Assembly: GCF_006345805.1 (NCBI RefSeq)
Contig: NC_043015.1
Location: 51,212,001 to 51,276,000 of the forward strand
DNA from: Octopus sinensis
Lineage: Eukaryota
DNA length: 64,000 bases
Direction: 5' to 3'
This document shows positions 23,894 to 26,406 of this stretch, piece after piece. The notes beneath the pieces were generated by a model, which saw nothing but the letters and a program-made list of their open reading frames with translations, had not been told where the DNA came from and did no database searches. Numbering within the stretch: position 1 is the first letter of the stretch; each line of letters begins with the position of its first letter. A program made the position numbers and the translations under genes.

Positions 23894-24282
23894 AATATAT
23901 ATATTTGTATATATATATATGATGTATATATATATATTTGTATATATATATATGATGTATATATATATATTTGTATATATATATATGATGTATATATATA
24001 TATATATTTGTATATATAGCAATTAAGGACAACTACTTAATAAGGAAAACTTAACAAGAAATTGTCAGGTAGATAGCGTGAAAACCTCATAAGAGAAAAA
24101 ATTTCGAAAATAATTATTTCTTATTGAACATATTAATTTATATATAGAGGGCATTATACATACATGCCAGATGGCATTATACATAGATGCCACACGCTAA
24201 GAGGGACAATTAGTCATTTCTACCAAAAATATTACTAATCCCACCGAATGCAATTTTTCAAAGTAAGACATTTAAAAAATAT

Positions 24283-24330
24283 AGACCTGTATCACCGTGA
24301 TTTCATACTTACGTATTCATCAGCAGGCCT
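24283..24330 (-). ncRNA. Type I hammerhead ribozyme, copy 1
   Basis: The minus strand reads AGGCCUG-CUGAUGA-AUAC(GUAA)GUAU-GAAA-UCAC(G)GUGA-UA/CAGGUCU. It has a 7-bp stem I with one G-U pair, a 4-bp stem II with a GNRA loop, a near-palindromic stem III and an intact core. Confidence 0.88.
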
Positions 24331-24758
24331 GGATGTATCATACATAAACGACCCTGCCTCGCTTAAGCCGATCAGCTAACTGATCAACATCAACGAAGCA
24401 CATGGGTGAGTTTACATATATTACATCCTGTAAATGTCAGACTTTTACGAATTGCATTTCGGGAAAGGAAGAGTTTTTTCGGAATAAAAATTTAGCAATT
24501 AAGGACAACTACTTAATAAGGAAAACTTAACAAGAAATTGTCAGGTAGATAGCGTGAAAACCTCATAAGAGAAAAAATTTCGAAAATAATTATTTCTTAT
24601 TGAACATATTAATTTATATATAGAGGGCATTATACATACATGCCAGATGGCATTATACATAGATGCCACACGCTAAGAGGGACAATTAGTCATTTCTACC
24701 AAAAATATTACTAATCCCACCGAATGCAATTTTTCAAAGTAAGACATTTAAAAAATAT

Positions 24759-24806
24759 AGACCTGTATCACCGTGATTTCATACTTACGTATTCATCAGC
24801 AGGCCT
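24759..24806 (-). ncRNA. Type I hammerhead ribozyme, copy 2
   Basis: Same fold as copy 1, located 476 bp away. Confidence 0.88.
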
Positions 24807-25259
24807 GGATGTATCATACATAAACGACCCTGCCTCGCTTAAGCCGATCAGCTAACTGATCAACATCAACGAAGCACATGGGTGAGTTTACATATATACA
24901 TCCTGTAAATGTCAGACTTTTACGAATTGCATTTCGGGAAAGGAAGAGTTTTTTCGGAATAAAAATTTAGCAATTAAGGACAACTACTTAATAAGGAAAA
25001 CTTAACAAGAAATTGTCAGGTAGATAGCGTGAAAACCTCATAAGAGAAAAAATTTCGAAAATAATTATTTCTTATTAAGTAGTTGTCCTTAATTGCTAAA
25101 TTTTTATTCCAAAAAACTCTTCCTTTCCCGAAATGCAATTCGTAAAAGTCTGACATTTACAGGATGTAATATATGTAAACTCACCCATGTGCTTCGTTGA
25201 TGTTGATCAGTTAGCTGATCGGCTTAAGCGAGGCAGGGTCGTTTATGTATGATACATCC

Positions 25260-25307
25260 AGGCCTGCTGATGAATACGTAAGTATGAGATCACGGTGATA
25301 CAGGTCT
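25260..25307 (+). ncRNA. Type I hammerhead ribozyme, copy 3 (core variant GAGA, probably inactive)
   Basis: Reads aggcctg CTGATGA atacgtaagtat GAGA tcacggtga TA caggtct. Base 25288 is G where the conserved A14 is expected. Confidence 0.75.
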
Positions 25308-25735
25308 ATATTTTTTAAATGTCTTACTTTGAAAAATTGCATTCGGTGGGATTAGTAATATTTTTGGTAGAAATGACTAATTGTCCCTCTTAGCGTGTGG
25401 CATCTATGTATAATGCCATCTGGCATGTATGTATAATGCCCTCTATATATAAATTAATATGTTCAATAAGAAATAATTATTTTCGAAATTTTTTCTCTTA
25501 TGAGGTTTTCACGCTATCTACCTGACAATTTCTTGTTAAGTTTTCCTTATTAAGTAGTTGTCCTTAATTGCTAAATTTTTATTCCGAAAAAACTCTTCCT
25601 TTCCCGAAATGCAATTCGTAAAAGTCTGACATTTACAGGATGTAATATATGTAAACTCACCCATGTGCTTCGTTGATGTTGATCAGTTAGCTGATCGGCT
25701 TAAGCGAGGCAGGGTCGTTTATGTATGATACATCC

Positions 25736-25782
25736 AGGCCTGCTGATGAATACGTAAGTATGAAATCACGTGATACAGGTCT
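25736..25782 (+). ncRNA. Type I hammerhead ribozyme, copy 4
   Basis: Reads aggcctg CTGATGA atac gtaa gtat GAAA tcacgtga TA caggtct. Stem III is the perfect palindrome ATCACGTGAT. Predicted cleavage is 3' of 25775. Confidence 0.88.
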
Positions 25783-26210
25783 ATATTTTTTAAATGTCTT
25801 ACTTTGAAAAATTGCATTCGGTGGGATTAGTAATATTTTTGGTAGAAATGACTAATTGTCCCTCTTAGCGTGTGGCATCTATGTATAATGCCATCTGGCA
25901 TGTATGTATAATGCCCTCTATATATAAATTAATATGTTCAATAAGAAATAATTATTTTCGAAATTTTTTCTCTTATGAGGTTTTCACGCTATCTACCTGA
26001 CAATTTCTTGTTAAGTTTTCCTTATTAAGTAGTTGTCCTTAATTGCTAAATTTTTATTCCGAAAAAACTCTTCCTTTCCCGAAATGCAATTCGTAAAAGT
26101 CTGACATTTACAGGATGTAATATATGTAAACTCACCCATGTGCTTCGTTGATGTTGATCAGTTAGCTGATCGGCTTAAGCGAGGCAGGGTCGTTTATGTA
26201 TGATACATCC

Positions 26211-26257
26211 AGGCCTGCTGATGAATACGTAAGTATGAAATCACGTGATACAGGTCT
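26211..26257 (+). ncRNA. Type I hammerhead ribozyme, copy 5
   Basis: Identical to copy 4, 475 bp downstream. Predicted cleavage is 3' of 26250. Confidence 0.88.
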
Positions 26258-26406
26258 ATATTTTTTAAATGTCTTACTTTGAAAAATTGCATTCGGTGGG
26301 ATTAGTAATATTTTTGATAGAAATGACTAATTGTCCCTCTTAGCGTGTGGCATCTATGTATAATGCCATCTGGCATGTATGTATAATGCCCCTATATATA
26401 AATATT

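Follow-up and report, generated by a model that had tools for sequence, protein, structure and literature searches.

A head-to-head block of hammerhead-bearing repeats in an octopus (TA)n microsatellite: a candidate non-LTR retrozyme insertion

Results

Architecture of the repeat block

The 64,000-nt stretch of the Octopus sinensis genome analyzed here (positions 51,212,001–51,276,000 of contig NC_043015.1, forward strand, assembly GCF_006345805.1; hereafter “the window,” whose own numbering is used throughout) contains, at 24019–26403, a 2385-bp block of near-identical 475/476-bp repeats that amounts to 5.0 unit lengths and carries one hammerhead-ribozyme motif per unit. A first-pass annotation of this DNA, made by a model from the letters and a list of open reading frames (ORFs), had described the block as five near-identical 475–476-bp units in tandem. 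That observation is partly confirmed: the block is real, and both its units and its extent stand, but its geometry had been mis-described. The units form two opposed arms placed head to head—~2.2 units on the minus strand (24019–25076) and ~2.8 units on the plus strand (25071–26403)—with the 475/476-bp period kept within each arm and one of the motifs mutated. Only seven positions vary in the entire block, and identity among units is 99.7%, a value that supports the earlier description of the element as “young.”

After orienting the pieces of the block by hammerhead strand, we divided them at the predicted cleavage sites; positions within the unit are given below as unit columns. Read in the sense direction, the minus-strand arm runs from column 165 (25076) to column 271 (24019) through the pieces M0 (25076–24766), M1 (24765–24290; 476 nt), and M2 (24289–24019), and the plus-strand arm runs from column 246 to column 154 through P0 (25071–25300), P1 (25301–25775), P2 (25776–26250), and P3 (26251–26403). 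The arms are unequal in length (1058 bp minus vs. 1333 bp plus) and meet at a junction (25071–25076) where a 6-bp microhomology, CTTATT, is common to both and lies within a 15-nt imperfect match. In the sense orientation, the 3′ ends of both arms sit at the outer borders (columns 271 and 154), and the center holds their 5′ ends (columns 165 and 246). Pairwise, the arm ends (24019, 25071–25076, and 26403) are nearly in phase, i.e., 154 with 165 and 246 with 271. In the closest register, 24019–25004 pairs with ~25062–26046 at 980 of 986 positions across a 57-nt spacer (25005–25061). As the outer ends stop at different columns and this is a single locus, no canonical terminus or 30–40-bp “tail” is definable.

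Both borders are readable. The left flank is a compound (TA)n microsatellite with TTTG/GATG interruptions (23622–24018), which on our reading was the insertion target, and the right flank is likewise a (TA)n microsatellite (26404–26493). A 13-bp sequence, ATTTGTATATATA, adjoins the element on its left (24006–24018, plus strand) and recurs on its right (26404–26416, plus strand; the sole occurrence in the right flank), so that one copy ends exactly at the left border of the block and the other starts exactly at the right border. We interpret the pair as a target-site duplication; its sequence contains an irregular ATTTG. Deleting one copy yields an uninterrupted microsatellite; keeping both yields a 13-bp spacing of TTTG interruptions that is otherwise seen nowhere. 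At 13 bp, the duplication agrees with the published size of retrozyme duplications, which exceed 4 bp when present, and because it encloses both arms, the composite appears to have arrived in one event. The right border itself falls in the unit’s own TATATATAAAT.

The hammerhead motif

The motif of the unit reads AGGCCUG-CUGAUGA-AUAC-GUAA-GUAU-GAAA-UCAC(G)GUGA-U-A↓CAGGUCU, with the arrow at the predicted cleavage site. Its DNA form from the first core segment onward (CTGATGA-ATAC-GTAA-GTAT-GAAA-TCAC(G)GTGA-TA↓CAGGTCT) occurs five times, all in the block and none elsewhere in the 64 kb. Helix I comprises 7 bp and is the open helix, with only the remaining ~420 nt of the unit to close it; helix II has 4 bp and a GUAA loop, and helix III 3–4 bp with a 3–4-nt loop. 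With short loops on helices II and III and the remainder of the unit reached through helix I, the topology is type I. In the circular fold, loop 2 is GUAA, and helix I opens into a multiloop with eight unpaired bases. The sole natural variant within the motif helices is a 1-nt insertion at the center of helix III/loop 3.

The earlier claim of a complete type I hammerhead in every unit holds for four of the five copies, in which the core (C3–A9, G12–A14, A15.1–U16.1, and H17 = A) is intact. Two of these lie in the minus arm, at 24283–24330 and 24759–24806 (predicted cleavage at 24290/24289 and 24766/24765, respectively), each with an 11-nt helix III (AUCACgGUGAU), and two lie in the plus arm, at 25736–25782 and 26211–26257 (predicted cleavage at 25775/25776 and 26250/26251), each with a 10-nt palindromic helix III (AUCACGUGAU). 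The remaining plus-strand copy, at 25260–25307 (predicted site 25300/25301), carries the core mutation A14G (GAAA to GAGA). A type I hammerhead descriptor returned four sites in the window, exactly the four intact copies, and none on either strand of random sequence, whether of window composition (6.4 Mb) or of unit composition (9.5 Mb). With no site in ~16 Mb of random sequence, the motif exceeds chance. An antisense ribozyme was considered and rejected, the other polarity being without a descriptor or Rfam match.

We further searched with a covariance model (R1) seeded with four experimentally self-cleaving retrozyme hammerheads, namely those of a coral, a mussel, and two axolotl constructs (PMC7229834 supplement), with filters off and 128 kb searched. 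The model ranks the four intact sites 1–4 with full-length alignments, at 16.1 bits for each of the two plus-arm copies and 14.1 bits for each of the two minus-arm copies (rough E-values of 0.02–0.09), and gives the A14G copy only 9.2 bits. This ranking lends modest support to a hammerhead identity and points in the same direction as the descriptor.

Together with its loop, helix III forms the perfect 10-nt palindrome in P1 and P2 and the 11-nt variant in M0, M1, and P0. For the 51-nt domain alone, the minimum free energy (MFE) structure is a non-hammerhead (−13.3 vs. −10.2 kcal/mol for the hammerhead), and when two domains are cofolded, the MFE structure is a double hammerhead in which helix III spans the two molecules as a 10-bp stem (−35.5 kcal/mol vs. 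2 × −13.3). Helix III is too short alone but is a perfect palindrome, and neighboring copies can therefore pair into a double hammerhead. In animal type I hammerheads, helix III is characteristically short and palindromic, with single motifs inactive and dimers active (PMC4209133; PMC3088659 Fig. S8; PMC7229834). The same arrangement, in which a palindromic helix III and loop 3 become a 10-bp stem in the dimer only, is described for newt satellite 2, Aedes repeats, and avocado sunblotch viroid (PMC3088659 Fig. S8; PMC4209133), and it is predicted here; those hammerheads differ in host lineage and unit sequence, and the octopus dimer is a cofold prediction. Since each predicted cleavage site is served by the neighbor’s core in the cofold, the A14G copy’s own site could still be cut by its neighbor.

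The repeat unit and its predicted monomers

The unit is non-coding, as had been claimed: on neither strand does a unit trimer have a stop-free frame of more than 54 codons, and a coding gene was rejected on this ground; a protein search with the concatenated stop-free unit frames found no relative. A tRNA-derived short interspersed element (SINE) was rejected as well, no tRNA having been found. The block consists of unit repeats only, without long terminal repeats (LTRs), and primer-binding-site and polypurine-tract motifs were not searched for. The unit has a GC content of 33% and is predicted to be highly self-paired; the MFE of the circular monomer is −140 kcal/mol, as against the −89 ± 5.6 kcal/mol that dinucleotide shuffles give (z = −9.1). 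In the MFE structure of the monomer, 67% of bases are paired, and hammerhead helices I and II are present. The smaller hairpin features listed by the first-pass annotation, i.e., GATCAGTTAGCTGATC, GCTTAAGC, and two 23-nt GGCAT...ATGCC hairpins, are all present.

On the plus arm, the sole monomer between two intact hammerheads is the 475-nt segment at 25776–26250, a predicted linear or circular RNA unit whose boundaries, as proposed earlier, coincide with predicted cleavage sites; on the minus arm, it is the 476-nt segment at 24290–24765. Each arm thus has only one monomer with intact hammerheads at both ends, a yield below that which the first-pass annotation implied.

A read-through transcript of 24019–26100, from whichever side it comes, would fold back on itself over ~985 bp with near-perfect pairing and a loop of 57 nt (25005–25061), making it a potential double-stranded RNA (dsRNA), small interfering RNA, or ADAR-editing substrate.

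Relatives, partners, and genomic surroundings

When the rest of the 64-kb window was searched with the unit by sensitive BLAST and nhmmer, only TA-rich noise was returned, and an exact look-up of three 42–43-aa unit ORFs in the assembly collection found none on record. A pattern scan with CTGATGANNNNGNNANNNNGAAATCAC hit at least 120 metagenome stretches and 3 viral ones; considered as relatives, these 123 loci lack a complete hammerhead and do not resemble the unit, and were rejected as chance matches. The scan with CTGATGAATACNNNNGTATGAAA hit two genome stretches and one viral stretch, a number at chance level. BLAST comparison of the unit with the published coral, mussel, and axolotl retrozymes showed no primary-sequence similarity, which is expected because retrozyme repeats are described as species-specific.

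An octopod origin of the window is well supported by sequence comparison; against a 21-kb Octopus vulgaris chromosome stretch (L127, from OX597814.1; reached via a reverse transcriptase [RT] homolog), it shows 122 repeat matches at 80–91% identity. The surrounding repeats include a decayed long interspersed element (LINE) fragment at 16764–17456 (plus strand; RVT_1 and PHD finger; 81% over 1.4 kb to the O. vulgaris copy) and a decayed LINE C-terminal piece at 58371–58913 (minus strand) from a family widespread in marine animals, neither of them Penelope-like. The best match of the window’s LINE RT fragment is labeled as a protein from a Herbaspirillum metagenome-assembled genome, on a 1.5-kb contig that is almost certainly animal DNA mis-binned with bacterial sequence. 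A SINE-like repeat of ~150–400 bp is present in at least 15 copies at 82–89% identity (including 18633–18778, 19607–20003, 55419–55830, 47217–47397, 44424–44808, 10010–10407, and 37646–38045) and also in O. vulgaris stretch L127 (1151–1533). Of two further tandem repeats, neither with a hammerhead match, one has a 245-bp unit (8723–9411; 2.8 copies, 85% matches) with a second cluster at 46008–46468 and a related copy in L127 (4328–4559), and the other a 216-bp unit (10910–11743; 3.6 copies, 79% matches). The window is also rich in microsatellites, and its long simple arrays comprise (ATG)n (~385 copies, 29276–30441), (AAT)n (~352 copies, 30873–31934), (AT)n (~796 copies, 38544–40125), and (GTAT)n (~142 copies, 36383–36938); the long “ORFs” listed over simple-sequence arrays are repeat artifacts. 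A run of 100 N at 61546–61645 is a scaffold gap, so the assembly is a scaffolded one.

Discussion

A probable retrozyme insertion in a single event

Numerous animal phyla, the molluscs among them, are well-documented hosts of retrozymes. We read the block as a non-autonomous, non-coding animal “non-LTR retrozyme” that arrived in one insertion event via reverse transcription primed from both DNA ends, a reading to which we assign a probability of roughly 0.6. The class assignment, which the first-pass annotation had also proposed, is supported by every feature tested in silico: non-coding repeats with one type I hammerhead each, low GC, a self-paired monomer, a dimer-dependent helix III, and a duplication longer than 4 bp. 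The published description of non-LTR retrozymes gives low GC (<45–50%), non-coding sequence, a highly self-paired monomer, and, when duplications are present, lengths of >4 bp (PMC7229834). Like the elements reported there from Acropora, Mytilus, and axolotl, the octopus block has few-hundred-bp non-coding repeats, each of them with a single type I hammerhead, a low GC content, and a self-paired monomer; helix III is short and palindromic, LTRs are absent, and the duplication exceeds 4 bp. Unlike them, it has a longer unit (475 nt vs. 170–400 nt for invertebrate circular RNAs), an A-U pair at 10.1–11.1, and units arranged head to head rather than as one direct array. It is, in short, a new example within an established class of ribozyme-bearing mobile elements, and neither a new kind of ribozyme nor a new kind of element. 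The first-pass annotation knew of no description of such a family in octopus, and we likewise found no report of hammerhead retrozymes in cephalopods in the searchable literature.

A link to Penelope-like elements (PLEs), suggested earlier from related motifs in Penelope-like pseudo-LTRs, is strengthened by the head-to-head arrangement and the insertion into (TA)n. PLE insertions form partial tandems in which an adjacent inverted, 5′-truncated copy is attached by its 5′ end; they are biased toward microsatellites, with the Naiad clade preferring (TA)n (PMC8557442). The octopus block bears this insertion signature, with head-to-head arms whose 3′ ends point outward inside a (TA)n tract. Further points of likeness are a hammerhead within the repeated part and a geometry for which two-strand priming accounts (PMC8557442; PMC4209133; PMC11167929): purified PLE protein cleaves and extends both target strands in vitro, unlike R2 or L1 (PMC11167929). 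PLE pseudo-LTRs carry hammerheads and may be direct or inverted (PMC8557442; PMC4209133), and retrozymes and pseudo-LTRs are sister sequences (2026 preprint). There are also differences. The octopus block is without an RT or GIY-YIG ORF, and its hammerhead is canonical rather than of the minimal PLE type, which has a helix II of 7–8 bp, a helix I of 4–5 bp, and an additional base, and lacks helix III (PMC4209133). PLEs are the presumed autonomous partners of the octopus element; in O. vulgaris, 30 recently active Penelope families are reported, with no mention of hammerheads (PMC13282606).

How such a block might arise can be outlined from its borders. In the order of events as we infer it, a single insertion would have occurred into the (TA)n microsatellite, with reverse transcription primed at both 3′ ends of a staggered break on a template that was either a linear multimer or a circle. 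Priming from both ends would place RNA 3′ ends outward on either side, and the two cDNA 3′ ends (...CTTATT-3′ and ...AATAAG-3′), being complementary, could anneal and seal the center by microhomology, the outcome being a head-to-head block of 2.2 + 2.8 units flanked by a 13-bp duplication. The position of the right border in TATATATAAAT would fit microhomology with a (TA)n primer. Taken as copies of one template, the two arms would span ~4.98 units with a 26-nt overlap (columns 246–271), which is the geometry of twin priming. LINE-1 twin priming, reportedly described by Ostertag and Kazazian in 2001, is said to produce duplication-flanked insertions with the 5′ part inverted, 3′ ends outward, and microhomology at the junction. 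The octopus block resembles it in these features and in the small overlap between the two copied segments. It differs in its template, which would be a ribozyme RNA in multimeric or circular form, and in its enzyme, which is likely to be a Penelope-like RT/GIY-YIG protein and not L1 ORF2p. Twin priming accounts for the 246/271 pair of arm ends; for the 154/165 pair, an integral multimer, a circular template, and chance are all conceivable.

On a multimeric transcript, adjacent copies could pair as a double hammerhead, and the RNA would then be cleaved to monomers of unit length. The remainder of the unit, a predicted stable branched fold closed by helix I, would fit a monomer circularized by a host RNA ligase. 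A further version of this scenario—that the locus is a duplication-flanked snapshot of a two-strand-primed retrozyme integration, from multimeric or circular RNA into a (TA)n break with the cDNAs sealed by microhomology—is possible and we put it forward as tentative.

Points against, and rival explanations

A number of observations weigh against the retrozyme reading. The Rfam Hammerhead_1 model (RF00163), proposed earlier as a check, did not match the motif, whether at gathering threshold or at E ≤ 10, the latter with both 2.6 kb and 91 nt of sequence, and the Rfam scans matched only AT-repeat noise (e.g., mir-297). The 10.1–11.1 pair is A-U instead of G-C in all five copies (pairing is retained), and the cleavage triplet is AUA, not the common GUC. 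G10.1-C11.1 is highly conserved in hammerheads (PMC4209133), and 10.1–11.1 is the most conserved pair after 15.1–16.1 (PMC3088659). Likely, the Rfam miss stems from A10.1-U11.1, from U15.2-A16.2 with the AUA triplet, and from the very short helix III; a validated axolotl hammerhead has U-U at 10.1–11.1 (PMC7229834), and it has the helix III core CACGUG and A17 in common with the octopus motif. The R1 model has a seed of only four sequences and E-values of only 0.02–0.09. At 475 nt, the unit is longer than the 170–400-nt circular RNAs characterized in invertebrates; retrozyme units range over 51–972 bp, and 475 falls inside (2026 preprint survey). The ~1-kb read-through hairpin would compete with ribozyme folding, and given the inverted form, transcription would have to start within an arm for ribozyme processing at this locus to be productive. 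The 13-bp duplication sits in low-complexity DNA. No second diverged copy was found in the rest of the window, the exact ORF look-ups, the protein search, or the contig pattern scans, so the evidence for mobility is one duplication-flanked locus. Nor did Pfam scans of the 30 larger ORFs find a Penelope RT or GIY-YIG ORF in the window, which has only the LINE-type RT and PHD fragment, at 16.8 kb.

The reading must also be set beside other accounts of the same DNA. One of them leaves the insertion intact and questions the ribozyme: the hammerhead-like motif may be catalytically dead or weak, with the element, if mobile, spreading as uncut linear multimeric RNA that never circles. The Rfam miss and the A-U pair at 10.1–11.1 speak for this, as do the poor in vitro cleavage of PLE hammerheads (PMC4209133), the finding that uncut RNA is the dominant PLE substrate in vitro (PMC11167929), and the arms themselves, which together make up ~4.98 units from one template and overlap by 26 nt, a pattern expected of twin priming if the template is a linear multimer. 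We nonetheless consider it unlikely, as the motif is complete and far beyond chance, its palindromic helix III and dimer fold match those of active dimeric hammerheads, and the validated axolotl hammerhead carries a weaker U-U at 10.1–11.1 with the same CACGUG core and A17. The insertion itself is denied if the block is instead a local minisatellite, amplified by unequal crossing-over and partly inverted by replication fold-back or template switch, with the hammerhead an inherited relic that now has no role. Such an account would explain why the inner junction falls exactly on a unit-internal imperfect 15-nt inverted repeat, where fold-back switching would occur, and why the helix III length variants (11 vs. 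10 nt) lie in contiguous units, as local homogenization would give; local amplification of retrozyme-derived repeats is, moreover, discussed in the 2026 preprint. It has difficulty with the outer borders, where a 13-bp duplication with an irregular ATTTG stands at both ends and removal of one copy leaves a continuous microsatellite, where the inverted arm would require a second precise switch into the flank, and where both arms point 3′ outward as target-primed synthesis predicts. We judge it quite unlikely.

More improbable still, in our view, is that the block is what remains of an autonomous PLE, i.e., a tandem or inverted pseudo-LTR minus its ORF and not an independent retrozyme family. 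PLE pseudo-LTRs do bear hammerheads, in direct or inverted repeats, and are sister to retrozymes (2026 preprint). Yet no ORF remnant lies in or beside the block, the duplication encloses repeats only, and the hammerhead is of the canonical animal type I, with a 7-bp helix I, a 4-bp helix II, a palindromic helix III, and no additional base after A9. Finally, the inverted arrangement might be an assembly artifact (e.g., a fold-back chimeric long read) over a true locus that is a simple direct array: arms of ~985 bp that are 99% complementary are a palindrome of the sort known to make assemblers fail, and the 100-N gap at 61546–61645 marks the assembly as scaffolded. Against this stand arms that differ in length (1058 vs. 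1333 bp), phase, and private variants, a 57-nt asymmetric spacer at the junction, and outer ends that each join unique flank with a matching duplication, and we regard an artifact as very improbable.

Implications

Several animal phyla are rich in retrozymes and in the circular RNAs that these yield, but the route of retrozyme integration has so far been deduced rather than seen directly; the Penelope–retrozyme link has so far been based on co-occurrence and on pseudo-LTR phylogeny. The octopus locus is unusually clean in this respect, with 99.7% unit identity, both ends readable, and the duplication and junction microhomology visible. If the family has more copies, it would offer a tractable case for Penelope-type mobilization, and if those copies share the form seen here, they would provide direct structural evidence that retrozymes are mobilized by Penelope-type two-strand priming. 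The ~1-kb hairpin product could, in addition, feed dsRNA pathways in a cephalopod with heavy A-to-I editing. The octopus locus would also bring cephalopods into the set of known hammerhead-retroelement hosts.

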